NCBI GenBank assembly: GCA_004431415.1
Contig: QPMI01000216.1
Coordinates: 12,553-76,552, forward strand
Direction: 5' to 3'
Length of the DNA: 64,000 bases
Origin: Cyanophora paradoxa CCMP329
Taxonomy: Eukaryota > Plantae > Glaucophyta
This document shows positions 9,957-63,623 of this stretch, in pieces (within the stretch, counting starts at the first letter, position 1; the number at the start of each line of letters is the position of its first letter). A program made the position numbers and the translations under genes. Under the pieces are notes generated by a model. The model did no database searches and was not told the origin of the DNA. It was given only the letters and a program-made list of their open reading frames with translations.

Positions 9957-10567
9957 ATAGCTATATAGGCTCAACTTCGAGCCTTGTAGCGGTGCTATCT
10001 TGCACCGCATGCACATGCATGGCAAGGGGCTTGCACATCGATCATAATCGCTTCTGGAGCTTGATCTAGCCTTGTAGACGCGTACACTCGATCACTGGCC
10101 CAGTGGAGTCCACGCATGCCTTTGTAGTTGCGGTCTCAATCAATTAGTCACAAGCACTGAATCAATTCAAGAATTCTTCAAGAAAGGGTCATAACAAGCG
10201 AGTCCCTGCGGAGCAGGAGTGGCCTTGGATCTTGGGGCTTCGAGTACTTCAAGGCGTGAGGGTAGCTGCTCTTTGCTCTTTGTGGTGGAGGGGGGGGGGG
10301 GGGGGGGGGGGGGGGCACTCGCCAAGGGTACACACTCGAGTGAGAGGGTACGAATTGTACATGTGTCGATGCTTTTCGACGTGTTAAAACCGCCTCGATC
10401 GGCCATCGTTCTCCCCAGGGTTCCGCAGGTCCAGACCTAAGGGCCTCTCCTTTCCCCAAGTCCGATCACAATATATAACATATATACCATGCCATGATGA
10501 TCGATGCCAAAAACTACAAACTATCGAGATCAATCTCTCATGATCATGATCATGATCAGCTCTTAAA

Positions 10568-44738: not shown

Positions 44739-45327
44739 CCTGCTCGCGCCTGGGCGCCCCCGCGCGGGGATCGAAGCGCGTAGACGGGTCCAACGTGCCC
44801 CGGTCTACCGTACCGAGCTGCAGCTGGCGCCCGCGCGGTCGCAGGGCTTTGTTCCCATCGCTAGGCCAGCATGCGCAGCAGTGCTAGGAACTAGTACTTC
44901 AGGAGCTTGCGGCTGTAGCTGCACTCAGAGGGCGCAGGCGCACTTGGGGCGAGATAACGGCTGTCGGACTGCTAGAACTGCTCCATAGCGGCACGCTTTG
45001 CTAGGTGAGTCTGCAGATCTAGACAACGATGATGCGCATCATGTGTGCGCGCAAGTCGCCGCAAGAGAAGCTCCCCGCCGCGCCCGGGGCCTCGGAGTCC
45101 GGCGGATATATCGATCGCTGCTGCGACGCTGCAGCTCCGGGGGATCCGAAGCGCGCGGCCGCAAAATTGTAACGGGATCGACGCGGAATCGACGCGAAGA
45201 CTAGCTAGCTATAGGCCCTAGGGGTAGTGGGATCCGAAGATCGACGGGTCCGCGGCCCCCCAAGGTACCCCAGGTCGGCCACGACTACGGTACCCCAGGC
45301 CACGCTGATCATGATCATGATGATGAT

Positions 45328-45435
45328 TGTAGTGCGCCAAATAAAATGGCGCGCCATCTTATTTTTATGGCGCACGCTTTTGAGCCATCGCAGAAAAAAA
45401 TGCGCCGGCCAGCGCAGCCGGAGCTTGCGTTGGGG
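45328..45435 (+). repeat. Left terminal inverted repeat
   Basis: tgtagtgcgccaaataaaatggcgcgccatcttatttttatggcgcacgcttttgagccatcgcag...gagcttgcgttgggg is the reverse complement of 55369-55477. Confidence 0.95.
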
Positions 45436-45658
45436 GGGTTACTACGACTCGCAGCGTATGATGCAATAGTACTATACTACTAGGCTAGTAGGTAGTGCGC
45501 ACAGCAGCAGCCGGCAGACAGCACTGCGGCAGCGGGCGGGGCGGTCCGCACATGGCGCCCAAGAAGGGCAAAGTGGCCAAGCAAGGGCCTTACTACGACC
45601 AAAGGTTCGATACTCTTGAGCTGTGATGCGAAGGCGCGCACCGGGCGCCGCGCTGATC

Positions 45659-48600
45659 ATGATGCCCGACCGCGCGTGCACCTTGCCCGTGACGCAGCGA
45701 CGGTGACCATCGAGGTCGAGGAGGCACGGGATGGCCTGCGGAGCTCATGAAGGATGCGGAGCGGCAGCTCCGCTTCACGCAATCCGTCGGACCTGCGGCC
45801 TGGACCTGTACTTCTACGATCCGGAGGCGGACACCCTCGATCTGAGGACTGCGTCTCGGAAGCTGCCGAAGCTCAGTCCCGGATGTTTCTTCTACGTCGT
45901 GCGGCGGGACATGCAGCCAGCGCACGAGGACGGCGACAGCAACGCCGACCCGAACTTGTGAAGCTCATGAAGCGCGGCAAGGCGCAGCAGCCGGTTCAGG
46001 CGGCGACTTCGTCGGACTCGGCGCAGCTGAGTTCGCTCGTGGAGGTGTTGCGCTTGCAGGTCCAGACATCCGTCGGAGCTGCGCTCGCCTCTGCAGGTGA
46101 ACCTCGAGCAAAGAAGAGGGCGGCGACAGGCGCGAACTACCTGAAGGAGGACACGGATGGCAAGCGCGGCACTGGGGACTGCAACACGGCACGGGACGTC
46201 GTGCGGCTACTGTGGGACGAGCCGATCGAGGGATCGGGGGGGGAGTACACTCCGGAGACATGCCCGCGAGCCTGGCTGTTTCTGAAGGTGCCGTCCCTTC
46301 ATTTCAGTTATCGAGCTAGAATTTAAGTTTATATCTCGAGCTCACGCTCTCTCGCGGATGCAGAAGTGCGGGGGCGGCACCCGCAAAACGCACGACACGC
46401 TGAGCAGACTGCGGCCGCTGCTCACCCCATTCGACAAGAAGGACCTCAGCCACCTTCAATCCCTCACGAGATGCAAGAAAGAGATCTATTTCATAACATT
46501 GAGAACATGTGCGTGCGTTGAAGATGGGGCAACGATGCCACGCCCTGATGCGTACACTCCGAACAGACTGTGCATTCTAAGGATGAGGAAAGCGGAGCAG
46601 GAGGTGCCGGACGACCACTACAAGCTTGAGGGCATCTCGCGACCCGGCATTCTGGATGTCGCCGACTTCATCCTAGGGACTCACAAGCTGACGGCGATGG
46701 AGGAGAACGTAGCCGGCTGGATGGATGGCAAGGACAAGGTGGACAGCGGAGAGTGAGCAAGAGTTCCATTATTTCGAGCAACACATACGAAACTGACCGG
46801 TGGAAACAATTTACCACGCAGGTACAAGGCGACCGGGGCGAAGAGGAAGGCCAATTGCAAGAAGAAGCAGGAAATCGAACATCACGACTCGTGCGAAGGT
46901 ACGCGACGCTGTTCCAACGCAATCCCAACGCATATTTCAACACCTCTCAACGCATACGTTGATTGACATACGATGAATAGTGTTGACGTAATCAACTTCC
47001 CTCCGTGTTGGCACAAGGCTCACGCGCACTTTTGCACTTGCAGAGCCGGCAAGGAAAGTGGCAGAGCAGAAGGGCAAGGCACGCGTCCGCGCCCCCCCGA
47101 CAGACGAAGGTGCGCAATGTGTACAACGCATGCACAACGCATCGAAAACGCAAGCGTTGGTATTGCGTTGGTTGATTGCGTTGCAAAGATACAGCGCAAT
47201 TTTCGTTGATTCCGTGCCCGCAGAGTCCGACGAGGAGGATGACGTAGAGGACAAGCTCGAGGACGACAACGAGAGCGGGAATGAGGACGAGGACGAGGGC
47301 GAGGACGAGGGCGAGGACGAGGACGAGGACGCAGAGGCGGCAAGCTCGAGGAAGCGCAACCGCAAGGCAGAGACGAAGGGTCAGGAGGCGAAGCAGGAAA
47401 AGCAGAAAGCAGGAAGCGCAAGAAGCAGGAGAAGGAGATGGAGAAGGAGGCGAAGAAGCCCAAGGCCGCAGCAATGACAGAGAAGGTGCAGTCTTAAAAA
47501 CGCAATCTGTGCCAGTCCGGGCATAGTGCAGAGTTTTAATACCGCAGCACAGAAGGAGGCCGAGGCGAAATCGAAGGAGAAGGCAAGGCGGCGGCAGCGA
47601 AGAAGGCCGCAGCAGAAAAGCAGGCCGCAAAAACGGCGGAGCAGGCAGCAGCACAGGAAAAGGTGCAGTGTTGCGCGGCACTCTCTGCGAGCGTTCCGGG
47701 CCTGGGGAACAGTTTTAATAACGCAGCGCAGAAGGAGGCCGAGAAGAAAGCGAAGGAGAAGGAGAAGGCGGCGGCAGCAAAGAAGGCTGCAGCCGAGAAG
47801 GAGGCCGCGAAAACGAAGGCGCAGGCAGAGGCTGCCGCGGCAGCACAGGAGAGGGTGCAGTTTTTCGCGTCACTCTGTGCGAGCGCCTGGCATAGGAAAG
47901 AGTTCTAATCACGCAGCGCAGAAGGCGGCCGAGAAGAAGTTGAAGGAGAAGGACAAGGCGGTGGCAGCGGAGAAGCTGGCAGAGGCGCCTGCAGAGAAGA
48001 GCCGAAAGAAGAGGAAGGCTGCATATGAGCTGGCGGCGGAGCCAATAATCCCAAATCCCCGACAGCTGCCGCCCCTTCCCAAGCTTCTCAATCCTGGAAA
48101 GCAGAGCAGCTTTCGGCAGCTTCGCAGCAAGGCAGAGCGCGCAAAAGCCAAGTCAGGCGGAGAGAGTCCACTCGCCCCAAGATACTCCTCCCGCCCGGGC
48201 CGGTTGGCCTACGTAAACCAGGAAACCGGGTGCGCACGGGCAGTCCTCGCAAATTATTATACAATCGGTACTGTAATAAATCAGACTGTAATTATACATG
48301 TGCAGCTCGAACTCTACAGACGGCGGCTCGATCCTGGAGCTTTCATCCAAACCCTTTCTCAGGCGAGCATAGCATTGCAACGCATACTCAACGCTTGCGT
48401 TGTACATACGTTGATGTAGCGTTGTTGTAAATCAGAACGGAGAAACCTCTCAGTCTCAGTCGTGCTCAGCACTTCATCCGCGAACAAGAGCACATAAGTG
48501 CATACGATGCGAAGTCGTCGTATCTGTGCTTCACAAAGCCCAACGACGACCTCCCTCCGGGCTCGGAGCAAGTTGTTGCGGTATGGGATCACCAACCAGG

Positions 48601-49862
48601 GGTGACGTCGCACCCCTGGAGGCTGTGCAACACGCACAAGTACGCCCAGCTCGAACCCCGTCTCGCAGCGGAGACATCGTCGGGGGGAGGCCCCCTCGTT
48701 GTGGTCATTGAGTGGCCGCGGGATGACCCCATCATCATCGGGGCCGCCATTAAACAGGGGGACGAGGTTGTCCAATATATGACGCCATACATATTTCAGC
48801 CAGTCAAACAGGATGACGGTGGCAGGAAACGGGGCAAGCGTGAAGTCGTCCCCGTCGCCGTCGATGACACATTTCTAGACGCTGTCCGAACCTGCAGCAC
48901 TCCCACGCGGTATGCAATGCCCCATTCACGTCACAAAATATTCAGATAATGTCTGCAGGTTGAACGTCGCAGAAGGAGCCGCAGAGGATGCCCGCCCGCA
49001 ACTCTCGAGACCCATTCTGAGGCGAGCATAACTTTTCAACGCTTACACAACGCTTTTCCAGCGCTAACGTTGATATTGCGTTGCCGTGTTTCAAATGCAG
49101 AACGGACAAAAAGCTGTATGTCCAGCCGTCTCCGGAAGACGGCGGCGGTGTTGTGTGCGTGCAACGGCATATTTTGTGGGCATTGCGTTATTACTTACAC
49201 GTCTTGGCAGAGATGTGAACCACGCGTTGAGGCCTCACCCGATTTTGTGGCACCTGGGTGGGGCCGCATTTCCAAGAAGGCCCTCGCAGATGAGGTGGCA
49301 ACGCACATCTGGAACGGACGGAAACAGATCGTGAAAACAGTTCTCAAGCTGCGATGGCCGCCGCATTTCGATCTCGAGCCACGAACGCGTCTCGTGGTTC
49401 GCGGCAGGAGGAGTACGGAGAGAGAACACACCATCCTCGTGCCATTCGACCAGTCCAAGACAGCATACGGACAGGCACCCGGGCGCGTCCTGCACTTCGA
49501 CACATCCACGGTTTACTACGTGCAGTACGCTCAGGTAGAGCTCGATTGGGATGCCGAGTACGAACTCTTCCTAGCCCTGCAGGTAACTACGCAATTCCAA
49601 TGCATGCGTTGCGTTTCCGCTGCTCACGTGTTGGATGCAGCACGAGGAGACGGACGCCGAGGGCGAGATGACTTTTGCACTTCGGAATGGCCCCGCGGTC
49701 ACTGTAGGAAAGGTGGAGGATCGCAGGACCTTCCGCCGTTCTATCTCGTACCGGCCACACCCGCGGCCGCTGCGTGGCGAAATATCGGACTTCAACGAGG
49801 GAACAGTGGAGGGCAAGGACAACTGGTGGCACAAGTGGGACATCTTCATGCTCAAGAAGTAG
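45659..49862 (+). CDS. Orphan second gene of the transposon (multi-exon; acidic and K/A/E-rich middle; apparent frameshifts; start uncertain)
   Basis: Exons flanked by GT/GC-AG sites: LDLYFYDPEADTLDL, ARDVVRLLWDEPI, GILDVADFILGTHKL, EEDDVEDKLEDD, PLVVVIEWPRDDPIIIG, KLRWPPHFDLEPRTRLVVRG...YVQYAQVELDWDAEYELFLALQ|HEETD...WWHKWDIFMLKK*. No family recognised. Confidence 0.6.
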
Positions 49863-50215
49863 ATTCTGTTGAAGTAGAAGTAGATTAATGTGCAGAAAGT
49901 AGCCATTGTGCAACTGCTTCAGCTTGTGTTCTCTGCACAATTTACAAGTCTTACTTTACAAGTCGTACTTGTGGTACTGATGGGGATGAAAGTTGAAGTG
50001 TGGGCAGGCTGGACGTGCTCACAGTGAAGTGGATACTGCTTAGTCGAGTGGGATGGAAATTCAAAGGATTTGGCCGCTCGAACTCGAAGGATGAGTTTAG
50101 TAGGTAACTCAGTGACTAGATCTGTAGTCACAAGTACTAGACAAGTACTCGAGAAGCTCTGAAGCAATTTGTAGTATTCTAGAGTTCTCAGATTTGTACT
50201 ACAATCATGCGTCCA

Positions 50216-50404
50216 ACGATCATGAGTCATGAGGCTAACTAGTCGGGTTCTAAAGTTGAACTACGATCATGAGTCATGAAGCTTAGTAGTCCGGTTCTAA
50301 AGTCGAACTACGATCATGAGTCATGAAGCTTAGTAGTCCGGTTCTAATGTCGAACTACGATTATGAGTCATGAAGCACATTAGTCTGGTTCTTAAAGCGA
50401 ACTA
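50216..50404 (+). repeat. 47-bp tandem repeat, four copies, between the convergent transposon genes
   Basis: Unit acgatcatgagtcatgaagcttagtagtccggttctaaagtcgaact, contiguous, outer copies diverged. Confidence 0.9.
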
Positions 50405-50740
50405 CAGCCAGGGTTCTTGAAACGCACGCACACAAGTAGACTAGCTATAGTCGTGTTCAAGATCTAAAATTGTACTATGACAATGAATGTAGTATCAATA
50501 AAGTATAGTAGTAGTAGCAATAAAGTATAAATTATAGTACATGATTCCTAAAGAAGAAGAAGAGTATATATGTATAAGACACGCCCCAGCCGAGCGCGCG
50601 CTGCATGCAGCCTGGCAGGACACAACGCATTCCCAACGCATGCGTTGCGTTTCCGTTGCACACCCGGTTCCCTCTCTCAGTTCCCTTTCAATTTTCGCAT
50701 CTCTGTCAGTTCCCTTTCAAGCAAATTTCTGACAAACACT

Positions 50741-53700
50741 TCATACACCATGCCTAGTGTTGGCCATATTCTGCTGGAATGTCTGCATCATCATCTGAAA
50801 GTGCTGCATCATCTGCTGCATCTGCTGCATCTGCTGCTCCATGCTGGGTGCCGGGGGCATAACTGGGCGCACAGGGCTCGAGGACATAGCTAGCCTAGAC
50901 TGAGGGGCTAGTGGGTAACATGGTGCTGCCAAGGCGGCTTCAAGCTCTGCCTGCGTGTAACTTGGCCCGGAGTTGGGGAGGACAGGCACCCCGTGTGTGT
51001 CCCGAGGTGCGGGCCCAACTCGAACTGGCCCACGAATGGGAGAGCTGGATCCAGAGGATGGCAGGGTAGAAGAAGAGAAAGACGGCCCCAGAGGGAGTGG
51101 GGGACCAATAACGGGAACCGCCCCTGGGACTGGGCCAAGACCCCTCGCAATTGGGGCTGACCCAACAGGGGGCAGCACCACCCCAGGTGCATAGTGCGGC
51201 AGAGGTGGCGGGCGTGGGCCGGGCGGAGCCGCAGCACGGGCCGGGCCGGGCGGGGCCGCAGCAGGAGACGGGGCGGGCGGGGCCGCAGCAGGAGACGGGG
51301 CGGGCGGGGCCGGAGCGCGGGACAGGCCGGGCGGGGCCGCAGCAGGAGACGGGGCGGGCGGGGCCGCAGCAGGAGACGGGGCGGGCGGGGCCGGAGCGCG
51401 GGACGGGCCGGGCGGGGTCGCAGCAGGAGACGGGGCGGGCGGGGCCGCAGCAGGAGACGGGGCGGGCGGGGCAGGAGCGCGGGACGGGCCGGGCGGGCCC
51501 GCAGCAGGAGATGGGGCAGGCGGGGCCGCAGCAGTAGACGGGGCGGGTGGGGCCGGAGCGTGGGCTGTGGCTGCTTGGGCTGCACGTGCTGCGGCTGCTT
51601 GGGCTGCACGCTGAGCGGCATCCTCCTCCTCTTTCTTGAGATAAGCTAGAATTCGCAGCTTGAGAGCCTCCTTGTTACCTGTGTGCGGCAGGTTTGCAGC
51701 ACGGAGGAATGCCTGCAGGGGCTTGTTGGTGGTGTGCATGCCAGGGGCCAGAAGCTGCGAGAAAAAGGAAATTAGAAGAGGAAGTCCAACGCAACTGCAC
51801 CGCAAGCGTTGAATTGAAGAACGCAAACGTGTGCTTTGCGTTGCTACAAAAACGCACCCGTCGTATCCCATCAACAGACGGGATGGGGCCGTACTTGTCG
51901 TCGACAGGGCCATCTGCTGTTGCATTGTCGGCGACGATCGATTCTGCCGTTGCGCCACGCTGGCGCGGAATGATTTTCTCCCCGACACTGGCCGTCTCCG
52001 GGTAGATGCGCTCACGCTTGTTCTTGCACCCGTACTTGCTGCACTGGCAGCTCGAGCAGCACACCAGGCCGCTTGTGAAACAGCCGCATTTCTCTGGAAG
52101 GCAGCCATCCCTGCACTTGCACGGGTCCACGTCGAGACCGGGGGCCTGGCCACAGAAGCTCTTGAATGCTGTCATGAGAGGAACGGTGCCGTTCATTATG
52201 TTGTTCGCACGGTTCTCCTCAATTGTCTTCCAGATTGTCTGCATACCTGCACCAGTTTTTTGATGAGTGTGCAACATTCGTGCAAATGGGACTACCCCTG
52301 CACGTACCGCCCACGAGGTTCATGTTGATCAATTGTGCTCCCTGAATGGGAGTGTCAATGAAACCCGCCATCGTCCTGATCGTGTAGAGGCCATGCGGGA
52401 CGTCCACCACTTCTGTGACGATCCCAGGTACCCTTGCTTGTAGGAGGACGTGCATGCCGAGCTGTTTGACAAGGACGGCCACACGATCCCCGATACTGTA
52501 GATAACAGGACCTGCTCCCTGCTTCTCCGCGCACGCCTTCATCTGGTCTCTGTACACGGCAAGCCGTGCGCATGCCTGGACATTCCCGAATGCACGCACA
52601 AACTGATCGATCTGTCCAACGCATGCGTTGAGAATGCGTTGGATGAGAGTGCGACAAAATTTGCAATGAATTGACGGCACTTACTACGTAGAACACCGGG
52701 ATATCCTTCAAGAGCGGGCTCTCCGCCCTCTGCAGAAGAGCGTTGGCGATATCTTCTTCGTACTTCGCCATGTCATCGCACACTCTGTTCACTTCCTCCA
52801 TGTTTGCAACCTGACAACACAATTACCAACGCATGCGTTGGGATGCGCAGACATTCCGTTGCGCACTCCGAGGAGGTCCTCAATGTCCTTCTCGGTGTAC
52901 GGCCTTGTCGGATCCGACGGTGGCTCAATTCCCAAAGGCCTTCGTGAAGGTCTGCGCCCGGTCATGGCCTCGATGGGTGTCATCTTGTGCCCGTTCGCGA
53001 ACTTCATGCTGTTGTGGGACTCCATTGCCTGAGAATCCAGCATCGATCAGTGCACTTGGAATTTTCAAATGGGGTATGGAAAGGATTTTAAATACATCGG
53101 GAATGGCTAGGGCCCAGTTCGCCCAGTCCTCCGCATTCTGGTTCCGGCGTTCGTAGCAAATAGCCTCGAGCGTCGGCTTCGAGTCCCTGTTCGCGCGCTC
53201 CACAGAGCCCTGGTGCTCTGGAGTGTACGGTTTCCCGTAGGCGATGGACGAGTTCGGGTAGGCCGCCATAAGGACCTTCATGATCTGCCATACTCCGTTA
53301 ACATAATTAATATTGAAGTTTACAAGAGATAACGGGGGATTTCACATCATTCTTGAACTCCGATCCGTTGTCGCAGGACAGGATTGTGCATGCGCCGAAG
53401 TAGGCAAATTTCTCGCGAAGACGATCAGCAACTTCGCCTGCGCACTTTGATTCGCAAGCCTCCAAGATGAGGAAACGAGTGTAGTGGTCCTGCGTTCGCC
53501 GTTGTTCGTTACCGGATGCAGAAATCTGCGCATGACCGTGCCGAAAACTGACCTTTATGGCCAGGACAAATGCCCAGAATCGCGGAATGACGTCCGTGAC
53601 AAAGACCGTCTTGTAGCAGCCCGGAAATTCGGGATCCGGGATTTTCTTCTCGTACCGGCACACGTGCACTGCTTGCTCCCAGTACCAGACCCTCTCGAGC

Positions 53701-55082
53701 TCGCCTGAGCTCTCATTCCACTTCCACCCCGGCAGCCACTCCTGCAACTCCCAGGTAAATTTTAACACGCGGCCAGGCGCATCAATAACAACATCTCACC
53801 ATGCGGGGGCAGGGGCCCATGCCTTGGGCATCTCAAAGAAGTCGACAATTGCCCGATCCAGAAACCAATCACCTTGATTGGATGGAGGATCCCGTCGGGC
53901 TGCCTCCTCTTGTTCTTGAGCTTGCAGACTGGACTGCAGCCCATCCCCACGACCGCAGGTGAGTCTTAGTCACGATTGGTTTGTCGGTGGACAGAAAACT
54001 CACCAAATCTTGACGTAGATGCGGACCAGGTAGCGAGGAATCGCGTACCTTTGCTTCGCATTGTTGTATACACCGGTGCCACCTTTGTGCCCGCTCTCAA
54101 GGTGTTCGCGCTGCGCACGATCATGACCGCGTCACAAACAGTGCAATGCAGTGGACATAAAAATTAAAATGTATTCTGTTCAACGCATGGTCAACGCATG
54201 TGTTGAGAATGTCCAACGCTAGCAACCCAACGCTTGCGTTGAAGATGCGTTGCGCGTGCGCAGAGAATTGCGTTGTACCGCGATCGCACCTGGATGCAGA
54301 TGAAAATGTCCTCGTCACACACCAGCTCCCTGCCCAGTGGGGGGCGTCGCCCGAATTTCCTCGCTTCAAGCGGTTGTCAACCTGCTTCTCCACCACCAGC
54401 CGAAGCTTGCGCCTTGGCCGCGGGTTGGGCATGGCGAGCTCCTCCGCTGTCAGGTTGTCTGTCGGATCTGGAACCTCGCGCAGCGTGTACTTCCCCTCAT
54501 GAACTCGCGCCAATTCTTCACCCGCTTCACATGCTCTGGGCTGCCGCTGGGCTCGGGCGCGTCCGGGTTTTCGAGGATGTACTTAACGTGTTCGATGTCG
54601 GCGCGAGATAGCAGCACCGCTCCGGGCTTCACACGCTGTATAGCGGCTCGATATTCTTCGAAAGTTACGCGCTGCACTGATGCTGCTGGGACCGGTTCAG
54701 CGCCTCGGGATTCGGCGAACATCCGCTGGACTCGGTGGCGAAATTCGGTGGTGTCGATGCGCTTGCCGGCTGCTGCGGCCGAGCCCTTCTTTTGTTGTTG
54801 CTGCCTCGAGCTCGAGCTCGAAGCCGCTGCCTCTGCTGGCTGTGATTCTGAAGCTGCTGCGCCATCTGCGCCCACAGCTGCAGGTGCTGGTGGCTGCTTC
54901 CGAGGGCGCCCGCGCGGCCGCGGCGGTTCACTAGTATTTGGCCGCTTTCGATTACGCGGCTTACTGCTCGAACTCGCCGCCTGTCCGCTCGAGGTGGACG
55001 GCGCCTGCTGGCCGCTCGATGGTGCTGACTGCTGTTGGTTGCTCGATTGCGATGACGATGCCGCTGCTGCGTTGCTGGGCAT
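50741..55082 (-). CDS. Transposase/integrase of the KRBA2/SCAND3-like (Ginger2/TDD) type: AT-hook, HHCC zinc finger, DD(36)E core, SH3-like region, CXC domain, SAP domain, Pro/Ala repeats, Q/M-rich tail; apparent single-base frameshifts
   Basis: RPRGRPRK; REHLESGHKGG...YVKIC|PVC; AIVDFFEM (first Asp, ~53841); DHYTRFLIL..FGACTILSCDNGSEFKND|IMK..IAYGKPYTPEHQGSVERAN; MTPIEAMTGR; YSIGDRVAV; CKCRDGCLPEKCGCFTSGLVCCSSCQC; LQAFLRAANLPHTGNKEALKLRIL. Confidence 0.85.
51230..51560 (-). repeat. Coding minisatellite encoding PPAPSPAAA / PPGPSRAPA repeats
   Basis: Repeated 27-bp units such as ggggccgcagcaggagacggggcgggc. Confidence 0.85.
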
Positions 55083-55368
55083 GTCGATGCGAATGTTAGG
55101 AAACAGAGTCTTGCACAGGAAGTTATTGCCGCAGAGCCCGGACAGATTCTCTGCGGGTGGACACCTGCATTCGAACTTGTTGGGAAGGTCTCTGACATCT
55201 GGATGCTCCCACCACCTCATTGCTGATGTGCCTAGGGCCGCGCCTTCGGGCTCGGTGCGCGCGCGCGGCTCCCCGACCGCTTCCCGCCAGTGCGGTCCTA
55301 TACCGGTAGCCCGGCGGTAGGCTATAATGATAGGCGATTTCGATCGCGACAGCTAGCCTAGCAGTACT

Positions 55369-55477
55369 CCCCAACGCAAAGCTCCGGCTGCGCTGGCCGG
55401 CGCCTTTTTTTCTGCGATGGCTCAAAAGCGTGCGCCATAAAAATAAGATGGCGCGCCATTTTATTTGGCGCACTACA
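55369..55477 (-). repeat. Right terminal inverted repeat
   Basis: Reverse complement of 45328-45435; ends ...cactaca followed by ATGAT. Confidence 0.95.
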
Positions 55478-55970
55478 ATGATCATATGACCATGAGTTGC
55501 CACAACTTGCCAGCTGCAGCTCGCTCGCCGAGTCGCGATCGGCCTCGCCGCCGCCGGCCGCATGCGCACATGTACATGCAGCCGCTGAGCTGCAGATCTC
55601 GAGCCTCAGAGTGCCCGGCCGCGTGCAATTGCAACGTGTCTACCGTAGTATACGTACGCATACGTATACGTATACGTATACGTAAACGTTTAAACGTATA
55701 TATATCCAGGTTCTCAAAGTCCCTACGCCCTGTCATAGCATGTGGGGCCTTCGACACAGATTTTCCCGAGGCGTAGGGGGTGGGGCTCGTGAGGGGTGGG
55801 TGTGGACCCGGGGGGATGTGGCATCAGGAACAAGTTGATGGAAAAAAAAGCATGAGTATCATTTCGAATCGATGAGCAAGAAATTACGAAGGGGAAGAAA
55901 TCCAAATTCACGGGGAAGAAGGGGAATGGGATCAGATCCTGCACTAAGTCCCTGAGTCCTGGAGAGCACA

Positions 55971-56690
55971 AGCCCCGAGCTCTCGCGGACTGCGCCCCGC
56001 GGACATCTGCGGGCGGACATCTCAGAGATAGTTGCGAGAGCCGCCCGGCCGCGCCGCCGGCTCACCTGGCCCAAAGAGCGAGGCCCGCCGGACGAGCCCC
56101 TAGCTCTCGATGCGCTTCGGCGCCCCGCGGGCTGCGGGCGCGCGCCACGGAGGGCGTCTGCGTGCGGATATCTCAGAGACCGTTGCGAGAGCCGCCCGGC
56201 CGCGCCGCCGGCTCACCTGGCCCAAAGAGCGAGGCCCGCTTGACGAGCCCCTAGCTCTCGATGCGCTTCGGCGCCCCGCGGGCTGCGGGCGCGCGCTACG
56301 GAGGGCGTCTGCGTGCGGATATCTCAGAGATAGTTGCGAGAGCCGTCCGGCCGCGCCGCCGGCTCACCTGGCCCAAAGAGCGAGGCCCTCCGGACGAGCC
56401 CCTAGCTCTCGATGCGCTTGGGCGCCCCGCGGGCTGCGGGCGCGCGCTACGGAGGGCGTCTGCGTGCAGATATCTCAGAGATAGTTGCGACAGCCGTCCG
56501 GCCGCGCCGCCGGCTCACCTGGCCCAAAGAGCGAGGCCCGCTTGACGAGCCCCTAGCTCTCGATGCGCTTGGGCGCCCCGCGGGCTGCGAGCGCGCGCTA
56601 CGGAGGGCATCTGCGGGTGAATATCTCAGAGATCGACGCGAGAGTCATTCGGCCGCGCCGCCGGCTCACCTGGCCCAAAGAGCGAGGTCC
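55971..56690 (+). repeat. 151-bp tandem satellite, about 4.5 copies
   Basis: ccggccgcgccgccggctcacctggcccaaagagcgagg recurs five times. Equivalent ORF starts at 56110, 56261, 56412 and 56563 give a 151-bp period. Confidence 0.92.
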
Positions 56691-62939: not shown

Positions 62940-63623
62940 CAGTGCTGTCATCATGATGCACACGGCCGTCGAGCATCATGATGCGTCAATTATGATCCAT
63001 CATGATCGATCATGACGTCTTCCCGCGATCAGAATCGTTTACCAGGGCATTTCCCACTCCTATTTCGATGCGCGGGCTCTCTGCCGCGTTTCTAATGCAT
63101 CGCGACGTGTTTATGACGAATTCCTGACCAGTATGGATAGATATTGGGCCAGGGTTGGCCTGAAAGAGGCCCACACCCCCCTCTTCCCAAGATTTTGGAG
63201 GCAGAGGAGTGGTTGATCAACCTCCTTCAATGTCAAGATAGTGTGTTATGTGTTTTAAAAGCTGTGTTAAGCTAAGCGTCTCTGCACCCATTCTCAAAGT
63301 GCGAATTGGTGCGATCTTGCATCGCCAGCGGCAGAGGATGGTGCTCCCTGTACCCCCCCACGGCGCCACAGCAGCCTTTCAGCATCGTCAGAATCGCTCC
63401 AAACCTCCTCTGACTAGCATATACGGTGTCTTTAAGCTGTATAGATCGCATAAAAGGTTGTTAAAACAGCGCAGGCGACCAGAAACACGAGATTTGTGCA
63501 CTGTATAGGTACCCCCCCTCACATCATGATGACGATCATCATAATCCGAGGTCATCATGATGCGTTAATGACGTCCCATCATGATGGCGTGATCATGATG
63601 TGTGCATCATGATGACAGCACTG
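62940..63623. mobile_element. 684-bp non-autonomous hAT-like MITE
   Basis: Perfect 24-bp TIRs CAGTGCTGTCATCATGATGCACAC (62940-62963 and 63600-63623). 8-bp flanks GGCCCGGC / CGCCCGGC (7/8 identical). Subterminal CATCATGATG repeats. AT-richer non-coding interior. Confidence 0.85.

Follow-up and report, generated by a model that had tools for sequence, protein, structure and literature searches.

Convergent arrays of a CpG-containing 8-mer in introns of a Ginger-like DNA transposon from Cyanophora paradoxa

The 64,000-nucleotide stretch of DNA from the glaucophyte Cyanophora paradoxa CCMP329 analyzed here (assembly GCA_004431415.1, contig QPMI01000216.1, positions 12,553 to 76,552 of the forward strand; hereafter the window, numbered from its first letter) contains a Ginger-like DNA transposon, the non-coding parts of which carry arrays of a short motif. 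The element has two convergent genes, open reading frame 1 (ORF1) on the forward strand and an integrase-type transposase gene on the reverse strand, and is bordered by terminal inverted repeats (TIRs). The array feature is real, highly non-random, specific to the transposon family, and has a precise geometry. Ten segments contain clustered copies of CAACGC followed by its reverse complement GCGTTG, 34 in total, and the coordinates given for all ten in the initial annotation of the window hold. The sibling copies of the element mentioned below are represented by protein models of C. paradoxa from EukProt (P0001 and P0056 to P0067). The gene models of this species were produced by BRAKER1, which trains AUGUSTUS on RNA-seq (PMC6704402). 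The array segments are:

46899-47043, + strand: segment 1, ORF1 intron with GT..AG borders, assigned from borders and frame continuity; three CAACGC, then decayed ACGTTG and GTGTTG.
47110-47223, + strand: segment 2, ORF1 intron, assigned from borders and frame continuity; two CAACGC, a dyad, and three GCGTTG; periods 11 and 13 reported by Tandem Repeats Finder (TRF).
48363-48435, + strand: segment 3, candidate ORF1 intron with GC..AG borders, assigned from borders and frame continuity; 3' splice site at 48435 or 48442.
49022-49100, + strand: segment 4, ORF1 intron with GC..AG borders, spliced out in P0061 and P0067; central dyad lost.
49583-49640, + strand: segment 5, ORF1 intron, spliced out in P0061 and P0067; decayed array.
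50612-50663, - strand: segment 6, in the 3' untranslated region (3'-UTR) or intergenic, past the integrase stop codon; GT..AG ends, putative splicing.
51755-51857, - strand: segment 7, integrase intron between the CXC and SAP regions, spliced out in P0060 and P0063.
52612-52684, - strand: segment 8, integrase intron, spliced out in P0056, P0057, P0062, P0063, and P0066; RNA fold z-score of -5.0.
52811-52866, - strand: segment 9, integrase intron, spliced out in P0056, P0057, P0062, P0063, P0065, and P0066; perfect 16-bp palindrome at 52826-52841.
54111-54289, - strand: segment 10, first integrase intron, spliced out in P0001, P0057, P0058, P0059, P0063, and P0064; four CAACGC, three GCGTTG, and two dyad centers.
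49150-49210, + strand: possible eleventh array, decayed, in a candidate ORF1 intron with CAACGG ... GCGTTA; a weak candidate with one-mismatch copies only.

The ten segments add up to 932 bp and contain CAACGC and GCGTTG at a density of 36.5 per kb. The same count, which the initial annotation had proposed, gives 0.87 per kb in the remaining element and 0.52 per kb in the remaining window. The motif was initially described as CAACGC(A/T). It can be sharpened to the 8-mer CAACGCWW (W stands for A or T), because two A/T bases follow CAACGC in all 34 segment copies. The 8-mer occurs 39 times in the window, compared to 5.4 +/- 2.3 occurrences expected from dinucleotide shuffles. Thirty-four of the matches are in the segments, two at the inner edges of the TIRs, and three elsewhere in the window, so that 36 of the 39 belong to the element. 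None is located in an exon of the element, and the scan of the window detected motif clusters neither in exons nor in the surrounding 54 kb of host DNA; for exons and host introns, this had been claimed from the first reading. Exact copies are absent from the remaining 14 candidate introns of both genes, in which one-mismatch copies are at background density. Of the moderately abundant hexamers (at most 110 copies without overlap in the window), the one with the most separate clusters is CAACGC: all eight of its clusters are inside the element, against 0.09 expected by random placement. Chance and low complexity were considered as sources of the arrays and are ruled out by the shuffle and placement controls.

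The copies are arranged convergently around a dyad. In every segment all CAACGC precede all GCGTTG, and the order is never reversed (rough P 3e-6). The 14-mer dyad CAACGCWWGCGTTG (CAACGC-WW-GCGTTG) has ten matches with at most one mismatch, distributed over nine of the ten segments, compared to 0.02 expected. The perfect 16-mer of segment 9, noted initially, is present. Neighboring copies of the same orientation are separated by 11 bp in 9 of 16 cases and by 22 bp in 3 of 16 (rough P 2e-12). Convergent copies are spaced across the dyad by 8, 19, or 30 bp, which corresponds to 8 plus multiples of 11. A period of 11 was also obtained independently by TRF. Each arm of an array is composed of just one to three units. 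The spacers of 3-5 nucleotides that separate the copies differ in sequence and show no complementarity between the two sides of the dyad.

Outside the ten segments, the 8-mer matches the element at only two places, exactly where the similarity of the TIRs stops. As initially annotated, TTGCGTTGGGG is present at the inner ends of both TIRs. The 8-mer scan positions the two copies as follows:

45425-45432, - strand: single CAACGCAA copy at the inner edge of the left TIR.
55372-55379, + strand: single CAACGCAA copy at the inner edge of the right TIR.

About 0.006 CAACGCWW would be expected in 108 bp, as estimated from the density outside the element (3 per 53.9 kb). The arrays spread over the central 7.4 kb of the element, 1.5 to about 5 kb from its ends, and together with the single copy of each TIR they provide a site about every 0.2-1.5 kb. 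In metagenomes, the array pattern was found at nine loci, by estimate about the number expected by chance, each of them a single cluster in a terminator-like context; the viral collection that was searched contained none.

The designation of the segments as introns in the initial annotation is borne out for six of the ten (segments 4, 5, and 7-10), which are removed exactly as introns in sibling models. The intron status of segments 1-3 is deduced from GT/GC..AG borders and continuity of the reading frame. Segment 6 is positioned beyond the stop codon of the integrase gene, outside any coding intron.

We hypothesize, with moderate confidence, that the arrays are double-stranded DNA recognition sites for a dimeric, cooperative protein that marks the whole element. 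A sequence-specific protein would dimerize on the central dyad and then extend cooperatively outward over half-sites placed one helical turn (11 bp) apart. Since such sites run the length of the element and include the inner edges of both TIRs, the bound protein would mark or coat the transposon family specifically. The introns and the 3'-UTR would host the arrays as the sole places in a densely coding element where an array of 8-mers spares the protein sequence. The likeliest binder would be encoded by the element itself, either ORF1 or an accessory DNA-binding part of the integrase. Its likeliest purpose would be the control of the chromatin or expression state of the element, and the assembly of a transposition complex is the second option.

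The arrays have an architecture that fits a protein binding double-stranded DNA, as implied by the self-recognition system proposed in the initial annotation: a defined 8-mer, phasing, a dyad, exclusion from exons, spread along the element, and copies in the TIRs. All 34 copies read CAACGCWW while the spacers vary and lack complementarity; therefore, the sequence rather than mere pairing appears to be conserved. The spacers of neighboring 11-bp units differ at about half of their positions and the cores are intact, which is not what uniform neutral decay of a tandem repeat would produce. The mirror symmetry of CAACGC and its complement around a 2-bp center is the signature of a dimer on duplex DNA, and the strict 11-bp register would place the half-sites on one face of the helix. 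In the alignment of segments 3 and 4, all 24 positions of the four motif units agree, compared to about 45% of the other intron positions, although the identity of the motifs is partly forced by aligning two arrays of one word. The outer half of the TIRs is built from a different repeat, GGCGCRC, and CAACGCWW would therefore represent a second specificity rather than the site of terminal cleavage.

Several observations count against this hypothesis, beginning with the protein. No candidate DNA-binding domain with specificity for the arrays was found by Pfam and PDB searches of ORF1 and Pfam searches of the integrase. ORF1 is without a recognizable domain, its AlphaFold models are of low confidence (two single-sequence runs with mean predicted local distance difference test scores of 51 and 37), and the CXC and SAP matches of the integrase are under the Pfam cut-offs. 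Some arrays are decaying, such as that of segment 5 with CTACGC, CAATGC, and CCGCTG, and therefore not every site is maintained. The initial claim that introns of both genes carry arrays is correct for a subset, only 10 of the 24 introns or intron-like segments. The exclusively convergent order also yields RNA hairpins, and array introns fold better than plain ones. Word-based searches for divergent relatives, which would have allowed a comparison, returned C. paradoxa models only. The exons of the sibling gene models are nearly identical, and conservation between copies would therefore say little.

The arrays could alternatively be selfish or neutral palindromic modules, either foldback-like or introner-like units or 11-bp repeats grown by slippage, that were copied between introns by recombination or gap repair and are harmless there. 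We consider this unlikely as a full explanation, but copying did contribute. The segments are not unrelated to each other outside the motif, as was initially stated, since two pairs are paralogous. Positions 48351-48445 and 49010-49110 (segments 3 and 4) are 73% identical, and positions 49573-49627 and 50609-50663 (segments 5 and 6) are 82% identical, with the similarity reaching a few bases into the flanks. Several segments have common 5' ends, for example GTGCGCAA.. and GCGAGCATA.., and the first CAACGC is 15-17 nucleotides from the donor site in six of the ten. Because of the paralogous pairs, the common 5' ends, and the recurrent distance from donor to CAACGC, the sequences indicate that copying accounts for at least part of the spread of the arrays. 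Three ORF1 array introns have the variant ACGTTGAT in corresponding positions (46956, 48408, and 49067), which suggests common descent of the three introns or a second tolerated half-site. Some of the arrays are decaying through changes of the CpG-to-TpG type. Foldback elements consist of short tandem repeats in inverted arrangement.

Intron families with inverted repeats occur in Amoebophrya (PMC7789003) and, as stwintrons, in Hypoxylaceae (PMC8469720), and introners have been described as well (PMC12130899). The array introns resemble introners and symmetrical intron families in their mutual similarity, inverted repeats, and capacity to form hairpins. However, introners are spread over many host genes and often have direct repeats at their borders, whereas the arrays belong, within the window, to one transposon family, and mainly one 8-mer is common to the array introns rather than similarity over their whole length. 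No direct repeats or target-site duplications flank the array segments, only the usual AG consensus at intron borders, and the 54 kb of host DNA in the window contain no array intron. The idea of selfish modules is further at odds with core hexamers that remained intact next to half-diverged spacers, and with the presence of the 8-mer at the inner edges of both TIRs. Segments 5 and 6 have the same orientation in the DNA but are in oppositely transcribed contexts, which argues against intron copying at the level of RNA.

Another possibility is a function in RNA, in which the convergent arrays would form pre-mRNA hairpins that aid or regulate splicing, by bringing splice signals closer or masking sites, or that feed a small-RNA pathway. 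The regulation of splicing by hairpins had been proposed as an alternative from the outset. Every array is convergent and hence foldable, all arrays are in transcribed sequence, and they are positioned between the donor region and candidate branch points. Folding is somewhat better in array introns than in the plain introns of the two genes, with mean z-scores of -1.86 and -0.29, respectively (Mann-Whitney p=0.004), and one array intron reaches -5.0. Nevertheless, nine of the ten z-scores are weaker than -3, and only the hexamers pair, so the non-complementary spacers become 5x5 internal loops. One word is used in all stems, whereas selection for structure alone would give different, covarying stems. 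Decayed copies contain five wobble-compatible and five pairing-breaking changes on the sense strand, and thus no bias towards G-U wobble. The 2-nucleotide center of the dyad cannot form a loop, and a reader of single strands would need just one of the two words. Neither the TIR copies nor the paralogue of the same orientation in the opposite gene is explained by hairpins. Rfam has no match at the arrays; a sub-threshold match to mir-297 was found on a (TACGTA)n repeat outside the element. We therefore judge a function at the RNA level to be quite improbable. Hairpins that normalize intron length were considered and rejected, since the residual lengths after subtraction are still 16-84 nucleotides.

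It is very unlikely that the arrays are sites of a host factor, either a transcription factor captured through intronic enhancers or a host repressor of the transposon family: the architecture would be the same as for an element-encoded binder, and the single TIR copies are in a promoter-like position 120-150 bp upstream of the start codon of each gene, but the 54 kb of gene-dense host DNA contain three copies of the 8-mer and no array, and the target of a repressor would be selected against rather than kept in phased arrays. The AAC core of the motif presumably resembles Myb-type sites, which we note as a lead only.

Recognition of the element by its own protein has a precedent in the VANDAL transposons of Arabidopsis. 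VANC21, encoded by VANDAL21, binds YAGTATTAY arrays concentrated in the introns and the intergenic and terminal non-coding parts of that element, and, directed by the arrayed 9-mer, removes methylation (PMC5735166). Methylation in C. paradoxa is restricted to CpG, with a global level of 32%, and is high in DNA transposons (PMC12344493). A VANC-like reading of the arrays is plausible because this host methylation covers DNA transposons and each 8-mer carries a CpG. In both systems the motif is rare elsewhere, the arrays are made of short tandem units, and the host silences transposons by cytosine methylation (PMC5735166). As in VANDAL21, a dense, family-specific short motif occupies non-coding parts of the element, here within the window. 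In contrast, VANDAL21 belongs to the Mutator superfamily and the element described here is of the integrase type, and the VANC21 motifs have one orientation, whereas those of C. paradoxa are strictly convergent around a dyad with 11-bp phasing. No VANC-family protein was found in the element when ORF1 pieces and P0061 were compared with Pfam and PDB sequences. Binding and hypomethylation were demonstrated for VANC (PMC5735166), and the present system is known from its sequence arrays. The resemblance to VANC-VANDAL21 is functional only, and we do not claim membership in that group.

We speculate, at a low level of probability, that an integrase-type transposon of a glaucophyte independently evolved a self-recognition code that extends over the element, made of dyad-symmetric, helically phased arrays of a CpG 8-mer in introns and at the TIR edges, and read by an orphan protein of the element against the CpG methylation of the host. 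If this anti-silencing reading were true, it would be a second, unrelated VANC-like invention, and the first outside land plants and Mutator elements. If the arrays are binding sites in the more general sense, they provide a compact and testable case of a transposon telling self from the rest of the genome, with a short word, a precise geometry, and sites that coding constraints push into introns. What is known so far of sequence-specific self-recognition in transposons comes mainly from the VANDAL elements of Arabidopsis, and a second case from a distant lineage and a different superfamily would suggest a general strategy. Many copies of the family are young, and the deletion derivatives among them have not all kept the same arrays. 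A long-read assembly and RNA-seq (PMC6704402) and an enzymatic methylome (PMC12344493) are available for C. paradoxa.

Two other types of motif arrays can be compared with those of C. paradoxa by their layout. The elements Ac/Ds (AAACGG hexamers) and En/Spm (12-bp TnpA sites) have subterminal repeats that bind transposase. The likeness to Ac/Ds and En/Spm comprises short motifs in both orientations, a CpG that is also contained in the Ac hexamer, and a binder encoded by the element, which is putative here. The repeats of Ac/Ds and En/Spm, however, are located within a few hundred bp of the ends, and the arrays of C. paradoxa are not clustered subterminally. The 11-bp repeats of ParR-parC and the omega heptads are bacterial iteron or operator arrays, belonging to partition or repressor proteins of plasmids, that nucleate cooperative binding. 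They have short half-sites in direct and inverted orientation and in helical register, as the arrays do, but the analogy is structural only, since those systems are bacterial, serve another function, and show no homology.

The organization of the element was read from its inverted repeat, with ends determined base by base, and from its genes:

45328-55477, no strand: whole element, Ginger-like DNA transposon of 10,150 bp with two convergent genes.
45328-45436, + strand: left TIR of 109 bp, starting with TGTAG; outer half with GTGCGCC / GGCGCGCC / GGCGCAC repeats; last conserved block GCGTTGGGG.
55369-55477, - strand: right TIR of 109 bp.
45323-45327, no strand: candidate 5-bp target-site duplication ATGAT, left copy, in flanks of ATCATG-like low complexity.
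55478-55482, no strand: candidate 5-bp target-site duplication ATGAT, right copy.
45553-49862, + strand: ORF1 gene with many introns, an acidic stretch, and K/E/A-rich repeats, from three-frame reads; the 3' part is covered by sibling models P0061 and P0067.
50741-55220, - strand: integrase-type transposase gene with an H2C2 zinc finger, DD35E core, SH3-like region, CXC-like region, SAP domain, and proline-rich tail.

The two TIRs are 98% identical, and the element has the termini TGTAG...CTACA. The outer half of the TIR (45328-45375, mirrored in the right TIR) is internally palindromic, GTGCGCCA...TGGCGCGCCA...TGGCGCAC. These palindromic GGCGCRC repeats are likely candidates for the terminal binding sites of the integrase, more so than CAACGCWW. 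ATGAT is present at both ends of the element, but this is a single copy of the element with ATCATG-rich flanks, so that the match could be a coincidence.

The features of the element fit a Ginger-like (Ginger2/TDD-like) DNA transposon, an assignment based on these features. Ginger elements are defined by an integrase-like transposase, TIRs of 40-270 bp, TGTNR termini, and target-site duplications of 4-5 bp (PMC2836005). Both the TIR length and the termini of the C. paradoxa element (109 bp, TGTAG) are as in this definition. The relationship of its transposase to integrases is evident from H2C2 and DD35E, through Pfam matches below cut-off and readable residues. In sibling model P0057, rve (E=3.3e-5) and Integrase_H2C2 (E=0.001) match collinearly, both under their gathering scores. 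The zinc-binding and catalytic residues are legible as HLESGH...CPVC (H-x4-H...C-x2-C) and DNGSEF-x35-E(RAN) (D...D-x35-E). The SAP match has an E of about 1e-5. Exons and open reading frames of the spliced genes were queried singly in the Pfam searches. A HMMER search with the core integrase exon against the whole library retrieved one close match, and the rest were generic rve relatives. The domain search identified no reverse transcriptase or RNase H in any open reading frame of the element.

Ginger2/TDD elements likewise combine an integrase-like DDE transposase and H2C2 with TIRs of this range, TGTNR ends, introns in the transposase gene, and the lack of a reverse transcriptase (PMC2836005). 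TDD-4/5 have a short target-site duplication, 5 bp long (PMC2836005), for which the C. paradoxa element has a candidate only. The element differs from Ginger in its size, 10 kb compared to about 2.6-7 kb for Ginger1, in its second large gene, and in the CXC-like and SAP additions to the integrase; its Pfam matches are under the cut-offs. Internal motif arrays have not been described for Ginger (PMC2836005). The element documents a Ginger-like family in glaucophytes.

ORF1 has no Pfam match at E<=0.05-0.1, when window pieces and sibling model P0061 were searched, and no PDB sequence match. One Foldseek search with ORF1 produced weak immunoglobulin-like noise only, which was disregarded. A unit of about 180 bp is repeated three times in tandem within ORF1 (47463-47975); the repeats are 78% identical, each composed of a K/E/A-rich exon and an array-free intron of 62-64 nucleotides. 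By its sequence, this exon-intron unit was duplicated as a block. In the integrase gene, a 27/81-bp tandem repeat at 51216-51564 encodes the proline/alanine-rich tail, the reading frame of which differs among sibling models. The AT-richer spacer between the convergent genes contains four copies of a 47-bp tandem repeat (50216-50405, 90% matches) with ATCATGA and GTCATGA words. Relative to the sibling models, the window copy has single-base frame breaks near 54505, 54340, 53880, and 53815 in the integrase gene and near 45955 and 47400 in ORF1, several of them in homopolymer runs; they may be genuine defects or indel errors of the assembly.

Exon translations from the element region match C. paradoxa EukProt proteins at 90-100% identity. 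In the 2019 assembly, no fewer than 11 further contigs have gene models for the same proteins, with exon identity near 100%, which indicates a young, multi-copy transposon family. Self-comparison revealed no second copy of the element within the window. Several sibling models are internally deleted and one is chimeric, and such derivatives are typical of cut-and-paste families. In P0058, about 53445 is connected directly to about 52545, and in P0059, about 53870 to 53028; P0060 fuses the exon that ends at 52867 with about 52040. In P0001, a short sequence is duplicated where the intron at 52866 begins, and the model then runs into the antisense of the 5' region of ORF1. The gaps in P0001, P0058, P0059, and P0060 suggest internally deleted derivatives, some of which may be exon skipping in the models. 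The possibility that arrays served as breakpoints of the derivatives was rejected, as the inferred junctions are mostly exonic or at exon borders, and only that of P0001 adjoins an array.

The window has a G+C content of 67%, compared to 67.6% in the published C. paradoxa assembly, where genes have on average 9.2 introns and introns are on average 86 bp long (PMC6704402). Given these values and the exon matches, we regard the window as nuclear DNA of C. paradoxa. At 62941-63620 is a unit of about 680 bp resembling a miniature inverted-repeat transposable element (MITE). Its 24-bp TIRs (CAGTGCTGTCATCATGATGCACAC and the inverse) are perfect, and both of its ends have subterminal arrays of the palindromic motif (C)ATCATGAT(G). 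Judged by its sequence, this unit is another transposon family of the same genome with arrays of a short palindromic motif, in the classical subterminal position. The flanks of the Ginger-like insertion site (45306-45327 and 55478-55495) are rich in ATCATGA, and a (TCATGA)n microsatellite is located at about 10538-10560. The Ginger-like element may have inserted in or beside a repeat related to the MITE-like unit, or may prefer such targets. A 151-bp tandem repeat with at least 3.3 copies (95% matches) occupies positions 56006-56500 and beyond, about 500 bp to the right of the element.

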